Source of the DNA: Lytechinus pictus
Taxonomy: Eukaryota
NCBI RefSeq assembly: GCF_037042905.1
Contig: NW_026974141.1
Coordinates: 13,082,001-13,146,000 of the forward strand
DNA length: 64,000 nucleotides
Reading direction: 5' to 3'
A program made the translations under genes and the position numbers. Every line of letters begins with the position of its first letter. Within the stretch, counting starts at the first letter, position 1. Under the pieces are notes generated by a model. The model was not told the DNA's origin. It saw only the letters and a list, made by a program, of their open reading frames with translations, and searched no databases. This document shows positions 9,260 through 35,075 of this stretch, piece by piece.

Positions 9260-9832
9260 TGTGGCTGCCTCTATACAAGAGGAGTTTCCAATAATATACG
9301 ACGAATGACAGGACGAGTTTCATATACGATTTACAAAAACTCTTTAATAATAGATGATTGTCGATTTTGATCAGAAGAATTATTTTGTAGATTAAGCGTT
9401 GCAGATAACATTCTGAAAATTATAGAACAGATATACAAGAATCATAAATACACAGACATATTATCTTCTCGTTTACACATTAGATTCATATTTACATAAT
9501 TTAGTTAATCATCATCATTCACATTAAAACAACATCGATTCATCATTATTCTCATAATAAATATTTGGTAATAACAGAGTGCAATTAATAATCCAATAAA
9601 AGTAATCGAACTTACCAAATATGGCTTTCTGTTTCTTTCTGTATACTTGACACAGCCTTTTTCCTTTTAACGTTAATACTGAAACCATGACAAATATTAA
9701 TAACACGCGCGCAACTATTATGATTATTATTATTATTATGCGCAAATATACATGGCAACCATGACGCAGCAATCAAGATTAAAATGACACTGATTACGTA
9801 ACAATTAATGCGCGCATTGCGTCGCAGCAACA
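9260..9832 (-). repeat. 3' LTR of BEL element (573 bp)
   Basis: No difference from 16185-16757 found by eye; preceded on the minus strand by purine-rich AAAGGAGCCA (PPT-like, 9833-9842). Confidence 0.95.
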
Positions 9833-10546: not shown

Positions 10547-13500
10547 CTAGTCATCTGCCAGGATCAAAACGAGCTTATGTATGGGTCTTTCCAAAAATCT
10601 AGGCTCATGCTTACGTTTACCGTCTTTTCGAAGATCGCGATCAGCCATGATCAGTTTCACTTTACGAACTCGACCGTCATCACATTTGTAGGCTTCTGTC
10701 ACTCTTCCTAGTGGCCACTGACTTCGAGTATCGCTGCAGTCTTTTACAATGACGATGTCGCCTATCGCGAGGTCACGCTTTGGATGGACCCACTTCTGTC
10801 TTGTTTGGATGTCTTGGAGATATTCACGCTTCCATCTACTCCAGAATTCGTTCGCTAGATACTGCACACGACGCCACCACTTCCGAGCATATACGTCTTC
10901 TCGCTGAAACTTGCCTGGGGGAGGCATCACAACTTTTGCCTTCATGGTTAGCAGATGGTTCGGGGTCAACGGTTCAGGGGCATCTCCTGCACATAGATTA
11001 GCTGTAGACAGTGGTCTGGAATTGACAACTGACTCTACTTCAGTAAGGAACGTCTGGAAGGATTCATCATCTAGTTGTGACCCTGAACTAATGAGGAGGG
11101 GTTCAAGGACTCTGCGTACTGTACCAATCTGGCTCTCCCAAACTCCTCCCATGTGAGATGCACTCGGCGTGTTCATCTGGAAGGGTATCCAATCAACTCC
11201 ATTCTCAAGTAGATACGTCTGGATAGATTCCTGGTCCAACTCTCTCATTGCTTCCCGCAACTCGTTTCTAGCGCCAACGAAAGCCGTCCCTCTATCAGAT
11301 CTGATCTGTCTGACTGGTCCACGACGAGTGAGGAACCGCCGGAGGCAGTTGATGAAGCTACTGCTTGTGAGACTATTTGCTGCTTCTAGATGAATGGCTC
11401 TTGATGCCATACAAGTGAAAAGTACTCCATATCTTTTCACAATACTTCTTTTTTCTTTGATGTTGAAAGGTCCAAAGTAGTCCACAGCACAGTATGTGAA
11501 TGGGGGTGCCGGTTCTAGGCGATCTTTTGGCAGATCTGCCATCTTCTGTTGCTGCAATGGTCCTCTCATTTTTCTGCACAAGACGCACTTTGATATGATA
11601 CTGGAAACTGCAGAAGAACCACCAATCACCCAGTATCCATTTTGTCTCAGTTGATTATGTGTGATTCCTCTTCCCATGTGGTTAACCTGCTCATGCTTGT
11701 GTCTTATGAGCAATGTCGTCATATGAGAATTTCTCGGCATGATGACGGGATGCTTGATTTCGTCAGGTACGGCAGCTTTGTCGATTCTTCCACCAACTCG
11801 CATGATACCATCACTGCCAATGTATGGATCTAGACGATATAGAGAACTGATTGGCTTGATTTCACTGTTTCTCTTCCTTGCTGTCTGTCTGTCATTTTGC
11901 TCACCAGAGCCTAAGTTGCGAAGTACCATCAATTCGTCACGAAAATGTTTTATCTGCAAGTTTCGGATTATTTCAGTTTCTGCTGCATCGACTTCTGCAA
12001 CTGTCAAGATAACACGTTGGAGTGGACGGTTCAATTTAGGGCTTGTCTTCCTCTTCACTTCTCTCTTTCGTAGTTTACTTTTGAACATCATACATAGTGC
12101 TACCACTCTCTTGGCACGTTGCCAGCTTGAGATATGCTGGAGGCGACTAATCTCGAAGTGGTTGGCTCTAGCAGTCATTGTAGACAAGGTCGACACATGT
12201 CTAACTTCTGGGTCATCTTTCTCACAGCTGGCTTTATACTGCTCTGTAGGAATCTTGAATTCTCCTTTCTCATGAAGAAACTTCGGTCCAACCAGCCAGC
12301 GGCTACTTTCAACGAGCTCCTTTGCTGTCATCCCTCGAGACGCCTCATCAGCAGGGTTGTCTTCTGTGTTCACATAGAACCATCTTTTGGGGTTTGTTTC
12401 GTCATGTATCTGTTGCACCCTATTTGCCACGAAGACATGGAATCTCCTTGCTTCGTTACGAATGTAACCCAAGACTACTTGACTATCTGTCCAGAAGAAT
12501 TCTTGAGGTTTAGCCACTGTCAATTCTTTCCTTAGAAATGTACTCATCTTTGCTGATACAGTGGCAGCCGTCAGTTCGAGTCTGGGAATAGTCATCTGTC
12601 TGAGTGGGGTTACTCTTGATTTGGCTGTCACGAGAGAGCAACACACTTTGTCCTCTTCATTCACCAGGCGAATATAAGAGCACTGTCCGTAACCATCAAA
12701 ACTTGCATCTGAAAAGTGATGTAACTCCGTACGCTTTACTTTGCCGAAGTTTGGAGGCTTGTAGCATCTTGGGACGTTTAGTTTCTCGAGTTCACTTATT
12801 TCAGATCTCCATTTCTCCCACTGTGGTCTGACGTCATCGGGTAAGGGGCTGTCCCAATCAAGTTTCCTTCTGCAGAGGTCCTGGAGAATCTGTTTTCCTC
12901 TCAGAGTCACTGGACTTGCAAGGCCGATAGGGTCATAAATTGAGCCAACAGTGGATAGAACTCCCCGTCTAGTAAGAGGGCGATCTTTAAGCTCAATTCG
13001 GAACTGCAATGTATCACTTTCCACGCACCAGAATACACCTAATGCTCTCTCTATTGGTAGTGGATCAACTTCTAGGTCCAAGTCAGCAATACCCTTAGCT
13101 CTGTCTTCGATAGGAAAACTCTGCAGAACCTCCTTATTGTTAGACATTATCTTGTGTAATCTCAGTCCAGCTTTACTGCAGATTGCTTGACTTGCTTTCA
13201 TGACACTCACGGCTTCATCTGGGGTTGCGACTGACTTAAGTCCGTCGTCGACATAGAAGTCATCTCGAATATATGAAGCTGCATTGGACCCAAACTCAGC
13301 TTCGCCATCATCTGCTGCTTTCTTGAAGCCATAGTTAGCACATCCAGGTGAGCTAGTAGCGCCGAATAGGTGAACCTTCATCCTGTATTCGATCACGTTT
13401 TTGTTTGGGTCACCATCTTCCCACCACAAGAAACGGAGAAGGTCCCGATCTTCCTCCGACACGAAGAATTGGTGAAACATTCCTTTGATGTCTCCAACGA

Positions 13501-16135
13501 CAGCAACTTCTTCTTGGCGGAACCTGCACAGTACTCCAACTAAGCCATTAGTCAAGTCTGGTCCTTGTAGGAGGTTGTCATTGAGTGAGATTCCTTCACA
13601 CTTTGCTGAGCAATCAAAGACCACACGTATTTTCCCTGGCTTTTTGGGATGATAGACACCAGTATGGGGTACATAGTTTACATTTCCTTGTTTGTAGCTA
13701 GAGGGAGCCCTTTCAGCACATGTTTCAAGCACATCTTTCATGAATTCTATGTAGTCTTCCATAAACTTTGGGTTCCTTCTAAACCTGGCATTTAGTTGTT
13801 TCCATCGGTTCTCTGCTACTTTGCGATTGTATGGTAGCGATGTGTTAGGCGTCTTGAGGGGGAGGGGCATCTCATAATGTCCGTCTGGTCGTTTCCTTAT
13901 TCCTTTCTCCATGATTCGCAGGAACTTCTTGTCCTCCATTGAGATAGACTGCCCTCCCATGTTTTCATCAGCAAAGTCCTTCTCGAGAATCGCAATGACT
14001 TTCTGCGGGCAGAGGATTTCTTTCGCTGTTGACGGGACTGCAAACTTCTCGCTCTCACAACTTGTAGCTTTGTTGCAAACAACAGCACCTGAACTTTCAG
14101 ATGTCAGGCAGACTTTTCCAATAATTCCCCAACCTAGGAGAGATTTTTGAGCATAGGGATCATCCTCCCCTCCAGTGATTACTTGTCGAGGCCGGATAGC
14201 TCTTGGGCAATCATTTCCGATCAAGAGTGACACATCAATGTTTCTATCATAGGGTATCATTTCATCCGCAACTTGACGAAGATGAGGCCAGTGATTTACC
14301 ACCTCCTTCTTGGGTATTTGTGACCTGCTGGCTGGTATTTCCTGTCTTGCAAAGGCCACTGGTAGTTGAATTACATGCTCCTTATTATAGTCTTGTATCT
14401 CCAGACCCTTGATTTTCTTACTTCCGATGTTAGAACTTCCATGCATTGTTGTCAGCTGCAGATTTGTTGAAGCTCCCTTTACGCCGAGTTTGTCACGCAG
14501 TTTCTCTGACATGAAGCTTACATTTGACTGATCATCAAGCACTGCATACACAAGGCACTCTTTACTTGGATTTTCTTGATGTCTCACCCAGACTGGTACA
14601 ATCATACTATGATCTCTGCCGTTTTGATCCTGGATTGAGCATACTGTAGTACAGTTGGCAAACCCTGCATGCTCAGTCTTCTTGGTAGCATAGTGTAGAC
14701 AGGACAGATGGCTACCCCCACATTCCTTGCACGATCGTCGATCTTGGCACTCCTTGATACGATGACTATCTGTCATCCCACATCCCATGCACAGTCTCCG
14801 CTTGAAGAAAAATGCCTTCCGGTCATACATAGGCTTGGTGACGAAATCATCACATTCATCTAGGGTATGGTCTTCCTTACACCAAGGACAGTTTGCATAG
14901 CTTCCATTTTTCGACCATTCCGATTTTACCCTCCTTCCATCTGTAGCGAAGGTTCTTGCTTTAGGACCCAATGCTCCAAGACTTCTCGAGGTTTCTCTGA
15001 GGCCTGCAAGTTCAGGGATGTTGGCCTTGTTAGCTGCCCTTCTCACAAACTCTTCAAACTTTGAGAATGATGGATATTCTTGTTGGTCGATGTTTTCTCT
15101 CTGACGGTCAATCTCATCTCTCCATCTTCCTTCGAGATATACAGGCAATTTCTCTAGAAGTTTGGCATTCTCCTGTGGATAATCTAAGATTCCAAGAGAT
15201 TTTACTGATTGCTTTGCTGCCTTTACTTTTCCTAGGAAATCTGCGAGCTCCATCAAACCGTTTGAATCCTTCGGTCCTATCTTTGGCCAGGCGGCAAGTT
15301 TATTCATGTAGGCTGTGCTAACGATGCTTGGATTTCCATATCTCTCACTTATGAGACTCATCGCTCTTTCATAGCCATCTTCACTTCCTATCAGCATGAA
15401 ATGCTGGACGACATCCTTTGGTTTTCCTGTTACATAATTATTCAGGTACATCAACTTGGTGGTAGATCCCATTGGCTTGCTATCTATCATACTTATGAAT
15501 GCATGCTTCCACATTGGGTAGGTCATGGGGTCTCCATTAAAGATGGGAATGTCTATCTTAGGTAGCTGAAGAGATGCCGACATTTCCTGATTAGCGGCAC
15601 ATTGTTGGAGACTTACGTTGCCGAGCTGAGTAACACATCTTTCCAGTGATTTGGCAATCTGCTCCCATCCTGACTGTTGGGTAGAAGGTACTTGGAAATT
15701 CTGCGGCGACTGCCCCGCTACAAGATTTGGAGGAGGCGTTACATCTGCCTCGCATGACTTCAGAAATCTATCCATATCAGCTTCTTTATTGACATCAAGT
15801 CCTTCCAATAGGGATGATTTCTCCAATCCAAATTCTTCCAGCACTTCTAACTTAGCTTCGTTTTCTGCGAGTTCTATCTCGCAGACTAATGCATCTTGCA
15901 TCTCTTCGTATGCTTCTTGTGCCATCTTGGCTTTTCTTTCCATTTCCTTTACTTTCTTTTCCTTTTCTTTGAAAGACAATTTTGCTTGCATGGCGGCGGC
16001 CTTCTTTTTTAACTCCAACATTTCCAGCTCTACAGAGACCGCTAGACTTACTCCGGTCCTCGTGGAACTGCACTTTGACTTGAGAGATCCGCATTCTTCC
16101 TTATCATGCTTATCTTTTCTCTCCATCATGTCCAT
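10547..16135 (-). CDS. BEL/Pao gag-pol polyprotein (Gag with three Cys/His knuckles, aspartic protease, RT, RNase H, integrase)
   Basis: LPKIDIPIFNGDP (Gag DUF1759-like); CPWCKEDHTLDEC, CMGCGMTDSHRIKEC, CKECGGSHLSCLH; LDDQSNVSF protease; FYVDD RT; HHFSDAS RNase H; HEQVNH..CVLC and DYFGP/SDRG/WE integrase; domain order PR-RT-RH-IN. Confidence 0.96.
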   Translation of the reverse strand: MDMMERKDKHDKEECGSLKSKCSSTRTGVSLAVSVELEMLELKKKAAAMQAKLSFKEKEKKVKEMERKAKMAQEAYEEMQDALVCEIELAENEAKLEVLEEFGLEKSSLLEGLDVNKEADMDRFLKSCEADVTPPPNLVAGQSPQNFQVPSTQQSGWEQIAKSLERCVTQLGNVSLQQCAANQEMSASLQLPKIDIPIFNGDPMTYPMWKHAFISMIDSKPMGSTTKLMYLNNYVTGKPKDVVQHFMLIGSEDGYERAMSLISERYGNPSIVSTAYMNKLAAWPKIGPKDSNGLMELADFLGKVKAAKQSVKSLGILDYPQENAKLLEKLPVYLEGRWRDEIDRQRENIDQQEYPSFSKFEEFVRRAANKANIPELAGLRETSRSLGALGPKARTFATDGRRVKSEWSKNGSYANCPWCKEDHTLDECDDFVTKPMYDRKAFFFKRRLCMGCGMTDSHRIKECQDRRSCKECGGSHLSCLHYATKKTEHAGFANCTTVCSIQDQNGRDHSMIVPVWVRHQENPSKECLVYAVLDDQSNVSFMSEKLRDKLGVKGASTNLQLTTMHGSSNIGSKKIKGLEIQDYNKEHVIQLPVAFARQEIPASRSQIPKKEVVNHWPHLRQVADEMIPYDRNIDVSLLIGNDCPRAIRPRQVITGGEDDPYAQKSLLGWGIIGKVCLTSESSGAVVCNKATSCESEKFAVPSTAKEILCPQKVIAILEKDFADENMGGQSISMEDKKFLRIMEKGIRKRPDGHYEMPLPLKTPNTSLPYNRKVAENRWKQLNARFRRNPKFMEDYIEFMKDVLETCAERAPSSYKQGNVNYVPHTGVYHPKKPGKIRVVFDCSAKCEGISLNDNLLQGPDLTNGLVGVLCRFRQEEVAVVGDIKGMFHQFFVSEEDRDLLRFLWWEDGDPNKNVIEYRMKVHLFGATSSPGCANYGFKKAADDGEAEFGSNAASYIRDDFYVDDGLKSVATPDEAVSVMKASQAICSKAGLRLHKIMSNNKEVLQSFPIEDRAKGIADLDLEVDPLPIERALGVFWCVESDTLQFRIELKDRPLTRRGVLSTVGSIYDPIGLASPVTLRGKQILQDLCRRKLDWDSPLPDDVRPQWEKWRSEISELEKLNVPRCYKPPNFGKVKRTELHHFSDASFDGYGQCSYIRLVNEEDKVCCSLVTAKSRVTPLRQMTIPRLELTAATVSAKMSTFLRKELTVAKPQEFFWTDSQVVLGYIRNEARRFHVFVANRVQQIHDETNPKRWFYVNTEDNPADEASRGMTAKELVESSRWLVGPKFLHEKGEFKIPTEQYKASCEKDDPEVRHVSTLSTMTARANHFEISRLQHISSWQRAKRVVALCMMFKSKLRKREVKRKTSPKLNRPLQRVILTVAEVDAAETEIIRNLQIKHFRDELMVLRNLGSGEQNDRQTARKRNSEIKPISSLYRLDPYIGSDGIMRVGGRIDKAAVPDEIKHPVIMPRNSHMTTLLIRHKHEQVNHMGRGITHNQLRQNGYWVIGGSSAVSSIISKCVLCRKMRGPLQQQKMADLPKDRLEPAPPFTYCAVDYFGPFNIKEKRSIVKRYGVLFTCMASRAIHLEAANSLTSSSFINCLRRFLTRRGPVRQIRSDRGTAFVGARNELREAMRELDQESIQTYLLENGVDWIPFQMNTPSASHMGGVWESQIGTVRRVLEPLLISSGSQLDDESFQTFLTEVESVVNSRPLSTANLCAGDAPEPLTPNHLLTMKAKVVMPPPGKFQREDVYARKWWRRVQYLANEFWSRWKREYLQDIQTRQKWVHPKRDLAIGDIVIVKDCSDTRSQWPLGRVTEAYKCDDGRVRKVKLIMADRDLRKDGKRKHEPRFLERPIHKLVLILADD

Positions 16136-16184
16136 TGTCAGCTTTTTGAATGTTATTCAGCTTGATGCTTAATTTGAATGTTAT

Positions 16185-16757
16185 TGTGGCTGCCTCTATA
16201 CAAGAGGAGTTTCCAATAATATACGACGAATGACAGGACGAGTTTCATATACGATTTACAAAAACTCTTTAATAATAGATGATTGTCGATTTTGATCAGA
16301 AGAATTATTTTGTAGATTAAGCGTTGCAGATAACATTCTGAAAATTATAGAACAGATATACAAGAATCATAAATACACAGACATATTATCTTCTCGTTTA
16401 CACATTAGATTCATATTTACATAATTTAGTTAATCATCATCATTCACATTAAAACAACATCGATTCATCATTATTCTCATAATAAATATTTGGTAATAAC
16501 AGAGTGCAATTAATAATCCAATAAAAGTAATCGAACTTACCAAATATGGCTTTCTGTTTCTTTCTGTATACTTGACACAGCCTTTTTCCTTTTAACGTTA
16601 ATACTGAAACCATGACAAATATTAATAACACGCGCGCAACTATTATGATTATTATTATTATTATGCGCAAATATACATGGCAACCATGACGCAGCAATCA
16701 AGATTAAAATGACACTGATTACGTAACAATTAATGCGCGCATTGCGTCGCAGCAACA
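16185..16757 (-). repeat. 5' LTR of BEL element (573 bp) with predicted internal intron 16338-16540
   Basis: Minus strand: Inr-like TCAGT (about 16607-16603), donor TTTG|GTAAGT at 16541/16540, acceptor TTTTCAG|AATG at 16338/16337, ATTAAA polyA-like signal at 16273-16268. Confidence 0.9.
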
Positions 16758-17724
16758 GGGACTGTTCATCCTGAAGTTCGTTTCAATAAAGCCAGAAAGA
16801 AAGTATAGGCCTAGATGATAAACATTAGTCACGGCTTGCCGAAAATAAAGAAAGAAAAAAATAAGAAAGTTATGAAACTGTAAACGAAAGTTTTGATTTT
16901 GTGGGAATTGTGCGAATTAACAGTGTTTGAAATAAATATTGATTCATGAGCTCCCCCTCTCTGTCTTTGATATTGGATGTATTTGAAACAAAACCATTGT
17001 AGCGATTATCTGTATTCAAAAGAAAATAACATCGTATATTTTGAGAGTTATAATATTATGTAGCACAAACGGAGTGTCAAAAGTTCAGTAGATTATTTTT
17101 AATTTTTAAAGTTTTCGATAAACTCCACTTTTGTACTATTATCAACATTTTGTGTATTTTTTCGTGTTTATGCTGTAGGGGGCTATTTATGTTCCTGTCA
17201 ACTATAATGTTTTGCAGGGCGCGATTATGGAGAAATTCATAATGACGTCTTTATGACACTGAGAGCTGGGGCATTTCAGTTCACTTAATGTGATTTGTCT
17301 TAATATGATCCAATTTTTACTGTGAAAAGAAAAAAAACGATAACAGTATGAGGCTAGGCCACATACAGCTATTAATAATTAAAAGAAATCTTAATAACCA
17401 ATCAATCAATCAGTCAATATTGAAAGAAAGAAATAATTCCATAAGTACATAAGTAAATCAACCAACCAACCAATCAATCAATCAATCAATCAGTCCAATT
17501 ATTATACCATAAAAATCAATTAACAATTAACAATTAACAACCCATTTAACAAATCTCAAAATGTTATATTCCTCTTGTTTATAGGTTAAGGACTTTAGAC
17601 TGAACATTTTATATTTAATTATATTTATCTTTTGGTTATTTTCTTTTATTATAAGTTTTAATGAAAATCGTAGCGAATAGAAAAATGTTGAAATGTTGAA
17701 AAATGTTCTTTCTTTGCTTTCATA

Positions 17725-30900: not shown

Positions 30901-33900
30901 GATTGAGACAGAGTGCATCCTTGCTATCGATGATGACATCATCATGTTGACACCGGATGAGCTGGAGTTTGGTTATGGGGTAAGAATTGATTGAGTCTAT
31001 CAAAATCATTAATTTTTCATTGTTGGTATATTTCTATGTGATTGTATCCTTGCCATCGATTTTTATCTGGGACAATGAATGATTTGAAACCTTATTTGAT
31101 CAGCTTTTATTCAAATCGTTGACGTTATTATGTTTTTTTTCATTGCTGCATTTTCCATTTTAAAGTTGTATTAGGATTAAACAGAGATTGATCAAGAATA
31201 TCTTTAGGAAATAAAATTTGCCAGTTTTTGTGGAATAAAAGTGATCACTAACTTTCCATTTCATTGCCAATTTTAGAAATATTACAGTAGTGATTACATA
31301 TTTTCAAGTTTTTGTTCAACGTGACTAGTCTTGCTCTCATTTCAAATTTTCTTCATTGATTGTGTTTACACTTGGGACAAATGATCCTTGAATAATCCAC
31401 ATGATGAGGTCAAAGGTCGTCTAGGGGTCAAAAGATCGTATTGATTGCAAAATCAGGCAAATCTCATGGAACCACCTTGGTTGTTTTTAGCATTGAAAAG
31501 ATAATAGTGTTGGTTTATTAGGGTCAATGTGTAATTTGTTTGACTTTTATGGCCATGCATCTAAAAAAAAATTTGGCCAAAACAGCAACATTTTTTCCCC
31601 ATTTGGTTTAAAAAGTACTGGACTTTGGTTCATTGCAAAATCAGTGAATTGCCCTTTATTTGGTCTGTGCTTGCATGGCATGTAGTTTTCATTCATTTTG
31701 GAATAGAAGTTACGTTTAATCTTAAGAAGAGCTTGAATTAGGTATTATTTGTCATTATGGTGAGTTTGTCTTATTTATGTAAAGTCATGATATGATATTT
31801 TCAATGTTTATTGTGGAGGAGCCGTGGTGTAGTGGTTCTGACTCTCGCCTTGTAAACAGAGGGTCGTGTGTTCGAATCCCACCGCGGTCTGGCGTCCTTT
31901 GGCAAGGCGTTAATCCACACTTTGCCACTCTCGACCCAGGTGCTAAATGGGTACCCGGTAGGATGTGAAAGTCATTGTAGCTTGTCCAGTACTGTGTGCG
32001 CCTCACCGGCGACTGACTGGAATACTCCCCAGGGAGTGGAGGATGTGCACACATTGTGTGCGGGAATGACTGATTGAATCCGATGACCGGGGTAATAATA
32101 TCTGTAAAGCGCTTAGACACGTCGTTCCGATGTATTAAGCGCTATATAAAAAACGTATTATTATTATTATTGCAGGTTTGGAGAGAGTTCCCTGATCGTC
32201 TTGTAGGTTTTCCAAGCCGCCTTCATCTTTGGGACGAGGCTCATGGTAAATGGAAGTATGAAAGTGAATGGATGAATGACCACTCTATGGTTCTCACAGG
32301 GGCTGCATTCTATCATAAGGTAAGCAAAACATGACTCTTCTATNNNNNNNNNNNNNNNNNNNNNNNNNNNNNNNNNNNNNNNNNNNNNNNNNNNNNNNNN
32401 NNNNNNNNNNNNNNNNNNNNNNNNNNNNNNNNNNNNNNNNNNNNNNNNNNNNNNNNNNNNNNNNNNNNNNNNNNNNNNNNNNNNNNNNNNNNNNNNNNNN
32501 NNNNNNNNNNNNNNNNNNNNNNNNNNNNNNNNNNNNNNNNNNNNNNNNNNNNNNNNNNNNNNNNNNNNNNNNNNNNNNNNNNNNNNNNNNNNNNNNNNNN
32601 NNNNNNNNNNNNNNNNNNNNNNNNNNNNNNNNNNNNNNNNNNNNNNNNNNNNNNNNNNNNNNNNNNNNNNNNNNNNNNNNNNNNNNNNNNNNNNNNNNNN
32701 NNNNNNNNNNNNNNNNNNNNNNNNNNNNNNNNNNNNNNNNNNNNNNNNNNNNNNNNNNNNNNNNNNNNNNNNNNNNNNNNNNNNNNNNNNNNNNNNNNNN
32801 NNNNNNNNNNNNNNNNNNNNNNNNNNNNNNNNNNNNNNNNNNNNNNNNNNNNNNNNNNNNNNNNNNNNNNNNNNNNNNNNNNNNNNNNNNNNNNNNNNNN
32901 NNNNNNNNNNNNNNNNNNNNNNNNNNNNNNNNNNNNNNNNNNNNNNNNNNNNNNNNNNNNNNNNNNNNNNNNNNNNNNNNNNNNNNNNNNNNNNNNNNNN
33001 NNNNNNNNNNNNNNNNNNNNNNNNNNNNNNNNNNNNNNNNNNNNNNNNNNNNNNNNNNNNNNNNNNNNNNNNNNNNNNNNNNNNNNNNNNNNNNNNNNNN
33101 NNNNNNNNNNNNNNNNNNNNNNNNNNNNNNNNNNNNNNNNNNNNNNNNNNNNNNNNNNNNNNNNNNNNNNNNNNNNNNNNNNNNNNNNNNNNNNNNNNNN
33201 NNNNNNNNNNNNNNNNNNNNNNNNNNNNNNNNNNNNNNNNNNNNNNNNNNNNNNGGTTGGTTTTCCAAGCCAACTTCATCTTTGGGTTGAGGCTCATGGC
33301 AAATGAATGTATGAAGTTGAATGGATGAATGACGGTTCTAACAGGTGCTACATTCTACCATAGGGTATTACAAACATGACACTTCATATCTTTTATAATA
33401 ATCAGAAGTAAAGATTAATGCCAGTTGTAACAGTCTAAAAATGAGTTTGAGCAAAATCCAACAAAATACTCACCCAAGTGTTTGTATGGATATCCCCCAA
33501 AATGTGCCAATTGATTGTATTATGGTATAAAATGTGTTCGTACTAAGAAATGGCAAAATAAGCATTGCATTCCAACCAGATGTTGGGTCTTTTTTTTCTT
33601 CAAATGCTTACCTGTCCATACAAATTGAAGAAAAAAAGAAAAAATAATTTAGTTTGATTATAATCCATTTTACAAGTTACACCACTTCTGCCTCCTAATT
33701 CACATTACTCAGTCATTTTGAGACAGTTTTTCACAATTTTATTTCATAACTTCGAAATTAAGTTAATCTGTGAACTTTTAAAAATTTGTTAATTTTGGAG
33801 ACCCGCTACTTTTTTTCCCCTCACAGTATTTCAGCTATGCCTACACACACAAGATGTCACCGCACATCAAGACATGGGTGGATGCCCATATGAACTGTGA

Positions 33901-35075
33901 AGATATCGCTATGAACTTCCTCATTGCTAACATCACCGGAAAAGCACCCATGAAGGTAATGTATTCTTGTATTCTCGTATTTAAGAATGCATGGTCCGTA
34001 TTCTGAACATCGGTTTAACTTAAACTGTGGTCTACAGTTTTTAATTAGCAATGGAGACTCAAGTGTGACACATTTTGCCTAGAGTTACTGATCCAGTTTA
34101 TAAGTATATTTGGCTCTCTGAATAAATCATTTATAATTATTTGGAAGTAATCAGAGAAATATTTCTCTTCACCATTGAAGCATGAAGAAATAACGGTGTA
34201 AACAAAGGTAAATTTTTTTAATAACAAACTAGATTAGATGATAGCATCAAAGATGGTGAGGTACTTATACCAAATTATGGAATAATCCGTAAAGATAGAA
34301 ATAGAATAGGAGATGGAGTTGCAATTTATATCCATGAAACTTTGAAATTTAAGCTATTGGAACATGATTCTTTTTCCTCGATAGAAGCAATAGCGATTAT
34401 TACCCATATGAACAAATGTTATCTTTTGTTGGTGGATTTAACTATTCAATATTAATTGGTGATGCAAATTTCGATCTAAAACGCCCACAGACTGAATTCC
34501 AATAAATGGCTTCCAATAAAAAATGCAAATGATTTTTGAAATGTATTTATACTATTCCCAAAGAGACTTTTTAATCCAATCATTCACTTTTTTTGGTAAG
34601 CAAGATTGCAGTTTGGGACACAATGGCATGGGTTTGTTTTTATGATGCTGTTCTTAAGTCATGCATGAAATCAAAGACTGTTCTTATGCAAAGTGATGCA
34701 TCATTACGTAGCTGATTTAGTGTCAAAGCATGCGTTCGGGTTGATGAGGGGCAAGTCGTGCGTAATGTATGGACAGCTTAAAGAAACACCACCCAGGACC
34801 AGTTTTGGTGTAATGAGGTCTAAACTCTGATTTAATTATCACTCCATGTTTAGGTTACTCCCAGGAAGAAGTTCAAGTGTCCAGAGTGCACCAGCGTCGA
34901 GATGATCTCGGCCGATCTTAATCACATGGTGGAGAGGTCCGAGTGTATCATGGAGTTTGAAAAAGAGTATGGCATGATGCCTCTGAAGACTGTCCAGTTC
35001 AGAGCCGACCCGGTACTCTACAAGGACAACGTCCCTGAAGAACTGAAGCGATATCATACTATTGGGAGTTTGTAG
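24957..35075 (+). CDS. EXT2: Exostosin-2 (heparan sulfate polymerase subunit), 706 aa, 10 coding exons
   Basis: Exons 24957-25465, 26615-26821, 27543-27735, 28081-28220, 29291-29516, 30102-30285, 30813-30979, 32176-32319, 33827-33955, 34854-35075; all GT-AG, phases consistent, total 2121 nt. N-terminal TM ([23 protein letters not shown]), [62 protein letters not shown]...IGSL* all match EXT2. Confidence 0.97.
25831..26246. mobile_element. MITE with CAGACCTGCCAACC TIR and 6-bp TSD
   Basis: TSD CACATA; near-identical copy at 36986-37374. Confidence 0.85.
28418..28760 (+). mobile_element. tRNA-derived SINE
   Basis: TGGTGTAGTGG A box, GTTCAAATCC B box, (ATT)n tail; same family as 31815-32172. 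Confidence 0.85.
28884..29019. mobile_element. Small MITE (PIF/Harbinger-like)
   Basis: Inverted ends GGGTCCCTTAACACAAAG / CTTTGTTTTACAGGCCCC; relative at about 36914-37440. Confidence 0.6.
30490..30598 (+). pseudogene. Degenerate copy of the 3' part of EXT2 coding exon 6, including donor
   Basis: GAGATCATCAA...GTTCTGGTTGTCTGGAACCA.AAAGAAAAG..GGTGA repeats 30201-30290; separated from it by an N gap. Confidence 0.8.
31815..32172 (+). mobile_element. tRNA-derived SINE abutting an EXT2 splice acceptor
   Basis: A and B boxes; (ATT)n tail ends 3 nt before the exon at 32176; candidate TSD TTATTG. Confidence 0.88.
33255..33388 (+). pseudogene. Degenerate copy of EXT2 coding exon 8
   Basis: GGTTTTCCAAGCC..CTTCATCTTTGGG..GAGGCTCATGG..ATGGATGAATGAC repeats 32206-32340 with a stop and a deletion; next to an N gap. 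Confidence 0.85.
34225..34480 (+). mobile_element. Decayed LINE endonuclease fragment in EXT2 last intron
   Basis: Translates [41 protein letters not shown], homologous to the APE region of the LINE ORF2. Confidence 0.7.

Follow-up and report, generated by a model that had tools for sequence, protein, structure and literature searches.

The self-complementary segment with which the retrotransposon Tf1 primes its reverse transcription is 11 nt long. For Tf1 and its relatives it is established that a 5' segment of the mRNA pairs with the primer site and that a cut by RNase H makes the primer (PMC4600332). Self-priming has also been predicted for two plant lineages, Tcn1 (gypsy) and TAR (copia) (PMC6317226), and it is documented only for lineages of the gypsy and copia superfamilies. 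The priming of reverse transcription in BEL/Pao elements has received scant treatment in the literature: Achilles, a BEL/Pao element of the olive fruit fly, has a primer site for tRNA-Tyr (PMC4580426), and primer sites are unmentioned in the BEL/Pao survey and in the paper describing Sinbad.

The 64,000-nt stretch of Lytechinus pictus DNA analysed here (the window) carries on its minus strand an intact copy of a BEL/Pao LTR retrotransposon. Judging from its sequence and that of its relatives, we think it likely that this element self-primes its minus-strand synthesis with a primer built by splicing, rather than with a tRNA. Its features are:

16757..16185 (16185..16757), minus strand: 5' LTR, 573 nt, starting TGTTGCTGC and ending GGCAGCCACA
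9832..9260, minus strand: 3' LTR, with its copy of the intron at 9615-9413
16762-16758 and 9259-9255, minus strand: target-site duplication GTCCC (5 bp), flanking both LTRs
16541..16545, minus strand: putative exon 1 end, ATTTG (last 5 nt), the complement of the distal primer position CAAAT at 16176-16172
16541 (last exon base) and 16540 (first intron base), minus strand: consensus donor, CATATTTG/GTAAGT
16338..16540, minus strand: putative spliceosomal intron of 203 nt within the LTR, with GTAAGT, a pyrimidine-rich tract and CAG
16338 (last intron base) and 16337 (first exon base), minus strand: consensus acceptor, TTTTCAG/AATGTTAT
16330..16337, minus strand: putative exon 2 start, AATGTTAT (first 8 nt), the complement of ATAACATT at 16184-16177
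16268..16273 (3' LTR copy at 9343-9348), minus strand: ATTAAA, a candidate poly(A) signal located downstream of the acceptor
16184-16172, minus strand: primer-binding position, ATAACATTCAAAT, directly adjoining the end of the 5' LTR
16157-16145, minus strand: second copy of the primer motif, AATAACATTCAAA; it lies within the leader, 28 nt downstream from the first copy
16135..10547, minus strand: gag-pol, a single intact translated ORF of 1862 aa
9833..9844, minus strand: polypurine-tract region, TTAAAGGAGCCA, abutting the 3' LTR

The two LTRs are identical at 573/573 positions and run from TGT to ACA. Pfam domains in the gag-pol protein are Peptidase_A17 (7.5e-50), DUF1759, DUF5641 and Integrase_H2C2. 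A Pao-type protease and BEL/Pao domains in one polyprotein, together with TG..CA LTRs and a short target duplication, place the element in BEL/Pao, as the initial annotation had proposed, and not among the Ty3/gypsy chromoviruses. A protein search returned thousands of BEL/Pao homologues, and the closest named protein, from Lytechinus pictus, is 96% identical. Superfamily and gag-pol layout are those of Achilles (PMC4580426). However, the TGG-type site for a tRNA 3' end that characterizes Achilles-type elements is found in none of the elements studied here; in the window element, TGG is absent from the whole 49-nt leader that separates the 5' LTR from the gag ATG (16135), and there is no TGG-initiated site near the LTR of the kind that defines the tRNA-primed class.

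When ATTTG is joined to AATGTTAT, as removal of the intron would do, the result is ATTTGAATGTTAT, which is exactly reverse-complementary to all 13 nt of 16184-16172; for the unspliced LTR, complementarity to the primer position is limited to 9 nt (GAATGTTAT). As a chance control, 572 other 20-mers of the window element were used as mock primer sites, with any GT..AG pair in the LTR allowed. None of the 572 reached 13 nt (the maximum was 11) and none reached 9 contiguous nt (the maximum was 8). These observations bear out the sequence claims of the initial annotation, all of which were correct: the LTR bounds, the 13-nt primer position, the donor and acceptor bases, the 203-nt intron and its presence in the 3' LTR as well, the missing TGG, the 49 nt from LTR to ATG, and the exact 13-nt match of the spliced junction as against 9 nt for unspliced RNA. 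Only a further suggestion, that CTGC/GCAG pairing extends the duplex, has fared less well: the pairing occurs in the window copy but is unsupported by the relatives, which read CTTT (L066) or CTCA (L071 and L072).

The second copy of the motif, AATAACATTCAAA, on which the initial annotation had not remarked, matches 12 nt of the spliced junction, and AAGCTGA trails both copies in the window leader. It is present in all copies of the window family, two of which have a C>A change, and absent from other families. In the minimum-energy fold of the spliced window leader, the junction is paired with this second copy and not with the LTR-adjacent one, a prediction that is not decisive.

Elsewhere in the genome there are about 28 further LTR copies, 85-100% identical to the window LTR, among them full copies on other chromosomes with 99.7-100% identity. 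Because the LTRs are identical, the ORF is intact and the full copies are this similar, we conclude that the family has moved very recently, and with exactly this leader and primer position. The window element can be described as a young, apparently competent sea urchin BEL/Pao retrotransposon. The donor GT is present in 28/28 family LTR copies, and the acceptor AG and the ATTTG end of exon 1 in 27/28 each. The first 8 nt of exon 2 are invariant in all 28, as are its first 13 nt, and all 10 aligned 5' copies with a leader (10/10) share one and the same 13-nt primer position. Covariation is not visible inside the window family, whose 28 LTR copies are too similar and near-invariant at these sites; in this alignment, invariance shows constraint, not covariation. 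Compared by region within the family, conservation of the intron is not distinguishable from that of the exons. At the 3' flanks of the LTR copies (L006, L008, L009, L010, L016, L018 and L019), A comes next in 7 of 14 3'-LTR or solo copies and AT in 6, a bias that may reflect target-site preference.

The Gag region of the window element, followed by its RT region, served as the query in a protein search for relatives, and the homologues came from starfish, other urchins, mussels, corals, a sea anemone and a fish. Their DNA was obtained by look-up or by searching the window's own genome, from which the P0006 family was recovered. The LTR of each relative was set by its two repeats and the target duplication, and GT..AG removals within the LTR were then tested against the bases that follow it. 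Thirteen elements were analysable. In 11 of them, from four urchin species, a starfish, a mussel, a sea anemone and a cichlid and including L066, the LTR contains a GT-AG intron whose junction is complementary over 10-13 nt to the post-LTR bases. The junctions, marked by a slash, are:

window element: ATTTG/AATGTTAT, match 13 nt, intron 203 nt
L066: CAAT/AATTGTCAT, match 13 nt, intron 126 nt
Diadema antillarum: TTTG/ATTGTTAT, match 12 nt, intron 1155 nt
S. purpuratus: TTCG/ATTGTTAT, match 12 nt, intron 625 nt
L. variegatus and L. pictus family A: TTCG/ATTGTTAT, match 12 nt, intron 741-744 nt
L. pictus family B: TTCG/ATTGTTAT, match 12 nt, intron 1111 nt
L079, L. pictus: TTG/TATATTAT, match 11 nt, intron 676 nt
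cichlid fish: TGAG/TTCTCAC, match 11 nt, intron 213 nt
starfish Patiria: AGGAG/TTTTCAC, match 12 nt, intron 242 nt
mussel Mytilus: AGAG/TTCTTAC, match 11 nt, intron 169 nt
sea anemone Actinostola: CAAG/TTTTAC, match 10 nt, intron 147 nt

Across these elements the contiguous (unspliced) match is 6-9 nt, and the full match requires that 126-1155 nt be removed. The match is composed of 3-5 nt from the end of the upstream exon and 6-9 nt from the start of the downstream one. The duplex stops at the LTR edge, as had been claimed for the window element, in 11/11 elements, and the next position is mismatched every time. Primer positions of the relatives start ATAAC, ATGAC, ATAAT, GTGAG, GTGAA, GTAAG or GTAAA, with no TGG. 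At exon position -4, the four non-urchin elements have T, G, A and C, which face A, C, T and G, respectively. Four different primer positions coexist in the L. pictus genome, each matching its own LTR, and this argues against a single host RNA primer shared by all. For family B, the donor was missing from the flank in hand, and an exon ending ..TTCG before a GT was predicted further upstream; the sequence fetched after the prediction reads AGGCCCAATTCG/GTAAGAAC, confirming it.

Mock primer sites reach the observed match length in 0-1.6% of trials per element. When the pairings between exon-1 ends and primer positions were shuffled among the nine distinct junction types, the summed match had a P of about 1e-5, and under the same shuffling the observed match of the exon-2 half was never reached. 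The initial annotation had called for a check of compensatory covariation in related BEL elements, in which changes at the exon1/exon2 junction would be matched at the primer site; such covariation is thus seen across 11 elements. From these comparisons we are highly confident that the complementarity between junction and primer position is real and conserved.

Some elements depart from the simplest pattern. Exon 1 of the non-urchin elements has the same AG ending as their intron, and splicing adds just 2-3 nt to the unspliced match. L069, with a 207-nt LTR, has an AG-adjacent match of 9 nt and TTAAGT in place of a GT donor. In L080 (G000:C8:16215690-16219169), the upstream part of the LTR contains a tandem repeat with units of ~25-30 nt (GGTGTA.GGTA..) and several GT sites, and its donor is ambiguous because the candidate GTs lie inside the repeat. 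Other ends of the elements are well conserved. The relatives also have 5-bp target duplications, and the 3' LTR is preceded by ..GGAGCCA (..GAGCCA/TGT) in all elements seen, including those of the cnidarian and the mollusc. The LTRs of the urchin group (the window element, L066, L067, L068, L071, L072, L075, L079 and L080) all end GGCAG[C/T]CACA. This end is probably the one recognized by the integrase, and GGAGCCA is probably the polypurine tract.

The borders of the putative introns fit the animal consensus: donors are GTAAGT, GTAAGA, GTAATT or similar, and acceptors consist of a pyrimidine tract followed by CAG or TAG. Their position is fixed while their length ranges ninefold, from 126 to 1155 nt, and in all these respects (GT..AG, consensus donor, pyrimidine tract with YAG, fixed position) they have the sequence of spliceosomal introns. 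RNA-seq coverage of 15900-16800 amounted to two reads in total in three rRNA-depleted runs from the species (0, 0 and one pair), none of them across the intron; the single pair is unspliced over the LTR/leader border, outside the intron. One contig set, whose nature as RNA or DNA is uncertain, is unspliced at the window LTR. AATAAA or ATTAAA occurs downstream of the acceptor in all elements, and the intron would therefore lie within R if transcription starts upstream of the donor.

The sequence just upstream of the donor is also conserved. An A is found 5-7 nt before the donor in the 11 elements, preceded by C in 9/11 and often part of CCAAT, and the complementarity begins 1-2 nt past this A in every element. 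Motifs resembling CCAAT or an initiator end at the donor: GGCCCAATTCG, CTCCAATTG, GGCCAATGAG and GGCCCAAAGAG (L068, L071, L085, L079, L070 and L094), and GCCATATTTG at 16541-16550 of the window. Among urchin families whose Gag proteins are just 40-50% identical, conservation extends over about 30 nt upstream of the donor, a stretch that could be either core promoter or exon 1.

One genomic copy records the removal of the intron. A solo LTR at G000:C6:10466201-10466579 (L031 6202-6580) reads ..GCCATATTTGAATGTTATCTGC.. unbroken, with exactly 203 nt gone. It is a 5'-truncated member of the window family, 81-82% identical, with no internal element sequence beside it, and it is the sole intron-less copy found in the genome. 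It has indels in common with the intron-bearing copies L027 and L028 and nests in their subfamily. Because of these common indels, and because the intron is present in all other families, the copy represents a precise loss, and on this phylogenetic reasoning the intron has been removed precisely at least once. Such a loss is the trace that would be expected of reverse-transcribed spliced RNA.

How does this arrangement compare with those already described? Tf1, Tf2 and Tj1 of the Tf1-sushi group are like the window element in having no tRNA site and in that the RNA of their own LTR complements the post-LTR bases (PMC4600332). In that group, too, the duplex ends at the LTR edge, an internal cut is required, and whatever lies 5' of the cut is regained from the 3' LTR (PMC4600332). 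The self-complementarity that defines these elements is present here (13 nt in the window element; 10-13 nt in the 11 elements), but it is not contiguous in the DNA, as is the segment that forms the start of the mRNA in those elements, since just 6-9 nt are contiguous. They are gypsy elements, whereas the window element is BEL/Pao, and its complement is absent from DNA and unspliced RNA and would appear only after splicing. It therefore stands outside the Tf1 group (wrong superfamily, non-contiguous match), and by analogy its mode of action is most likely Tf1-like. In Tcn1 and TAR, self-priming was likewise deduced from the complementarity between LTR and primer position (PMC6317226), but in those plant elements, which belong to other superfamilies, the match is contiguous and there is no intron.

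Splicing of element RNA is familiar in other settings. Retroviral leaders have splice donors in or near R. In Ogre the host splices the element RNA, removing an intron between ORFs (PMC6317226). In both cases, however, the purpose of splicing is protein expression and the spliced RNA does not act as the replication primer, whereas in the window element the two splice sites are located in the LTR and it is the primer position that the junction matches.

Several other explanations must be weighed against a splicing-built primer. Self-priming of the plain Tf1 type would do without splicing: RNA would start at or next to the 'acceptor' CAG, which is initiator-like, its first 6-9 nt would pair, and the exon-1 match would be fortuitous. 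The primers of known self-priming elements do come from the 5' end of the mRNA (PMC4600332), a contiguous match of 8-9 nt is rare by itself (0-1% of mock sites), and L069 has a contiguous match only, with no donor. This would nonetheless leave unexplained why the exon-1 end covaries with the distal primer position, why consensus donors and pyrimidine tracts are conserved and why exactly 203 nt were lost, and in L066 the AG lies wholly outside the match; we consider it unlikely. The covariation of both halves would be accounted for equally well if two LTR segments paired side by side in unspliced RNA, with the 126-1155 nt between them looped out and no role for the spliceosome, and differential splicing of the two LTR copies would then be unneeded. 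Yet such bipartite pairing does not explain why GTAAGT-type donors, pyrimidine tracts and CAG stand exactly at the two borders in 11/11 elements, nor why the loop has gone to the base from one genomic copy, and we judge it quite improbable.

The complementarity could also be real but have a role outside priming, such as a fold by which translation or packaging could discriminate between spliced and unspliced RNA; the actual primer would then be a host RNA. The predicted fold of the window-family leader, which favours the second motif copy, is in keeping with such a role. Against it stand the coincidence of the duplex end with the LTR edge, where the 3' end of a primer is required, and the mismatch that follows in 11/11 elements, as well as the lack of TGG at the edge in any element and the differences in primer position among families of one host; this explanation, too, seems to us quite improbable. 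Half-tRNA priming, as in copia, Ty5 and the plant elements Bianca and Osser, shares with the window element a primer site without TGG (PMC6317226), but there the site corresponds to an internal tRNA segment common to all hosts' copies, whereas here it covaries with each element's own LTR, which argues against a half-tRNA or host small-RNA primer. ARAGORN, run on the sequence gathered, found one tRNA-Gly, with no match to the primer position. Finally, the initial annotation arose from visual inspection of one element, and short matches are inflated where sequence is AT-rich, so that the resemblance might have been a product of post-hoc searching. The mock-site controls, the permutation test, the family B prediction and the recurrence in four phyla leave almost no room for this, and chance is effectively refuted by the comparative data.

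Returning to the splicing-built primer, we infer present-day splicing, cleavage and priming from the anatomy of the element, the conservation and covariation across phyla and the one precise loss, and we propose the following course. Removal of the LTR intron would join the exon ends into a sequence of 10-13 nt (13 nt in the window element) complementary to the post-LTR bases, and this junction would anneal to the primer position, either within one molecule or with a second, spliced transcript supplying the junction to an unspliced partner. The RNA would then be cut at the end of the duplex, which in the window element is after ..GTTAT (16330/16329), in the manner of RNase H in Tf1; the sole hint of such a cut in the sequence is the constant coincidence of the duplex end with the LTR edge, with a mismatch next to it. 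The primer RNA, ending ..AAUGUUAU, would become joined to strong-stop DNA at the LTR edge (16185/16184).

The new 3' end of the primer would be extended through U5, and the strong-stop DNA would reach 16329 only; it would not contain the junction because the cut falls 3' of it. The upstream part of the LTR, including the intron, would be copied from the 3' LTR, and progeny would thereby retain the intron, an intron-less LTR being expected when the 3' copy is spliced too. The location of the candidate poly(A) signals downstream of the acceptor agrees with this course. Plus-strand copying of the primer might keep junction and primer position matched. It counts against a strictly in-cis version of this scheme that it requires the intron of the 5' LTR to be removed and that of the 3' LTR to be left unspliced.

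A more specific version would relieve this difficulty, and we put it forward tentatively, as possible but doubtful. The conserved A would be the transcription start, followed by a mini-exon of 5-7 nt, and the capped 5'-terminal 12-15 nt of the spliced RNA would serve as primer, throughout one entire clade of BEL/Pao that ranges from cnidarians to fish. Splicing near the cap would then take place at the 5' LTR and not at the 3' LTR, which would explain how the intron is retained through replication. As in Tf1, the primer would come from the 5' end of the RNA, but it would exist only after splicing.

The initial annotation had been aware of no description of self-priming in BEL/Pao or of self-priming dependent on splicing, and our search of the open-access literature for BEL/Pao self-priming, LTR introns or spliced primers likewise found nothing relevant; within that literature, a self-primer built by splicing seems to be undescribed. 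If the proposal is correct, BEL/Pao would be the third superfamily with self-priming, and this would be the first case in which host RNA processing, here splicing, creates a primer sequence. Nuclear splicing would be coupled to replication competence, and the retention of the intron by the LTR despite the use of spliced RNA would be explained. For annotators, it would supply a simple primer-site rule for a large, widespread group of retrotransposons in animals that tRNA-based tools will report as having no site.

We also note several minor observations. A genome search with the 12-mer TTTGAATGTTAT gave 685 matches, as against 521 for the reversed control, and is too common to be informative; junction matches with 2 mismatches on C15 and C16 proved to be unrelated sequence. 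A degenerate copy on C7, L032, was left out on account of its missing ORF and rearranged LTR end. No ORF of >150 aa is found over 10 kb of it, ATACATTCAAAT occupies its primer position, and at 9334-9473 (G000:C7:29699333-29699472) a duplication of its LTR end forms an inverted repeat of 57 nt that is 81% complementary. More than 40 tRNA gene matches are found in a 35-kb tandem array at G000:C4:9700711-9735957. Within the window itself, positions 32001-34000 have a G+C content of 0.206, compared with 0.32-0.46 in the rest of the window.
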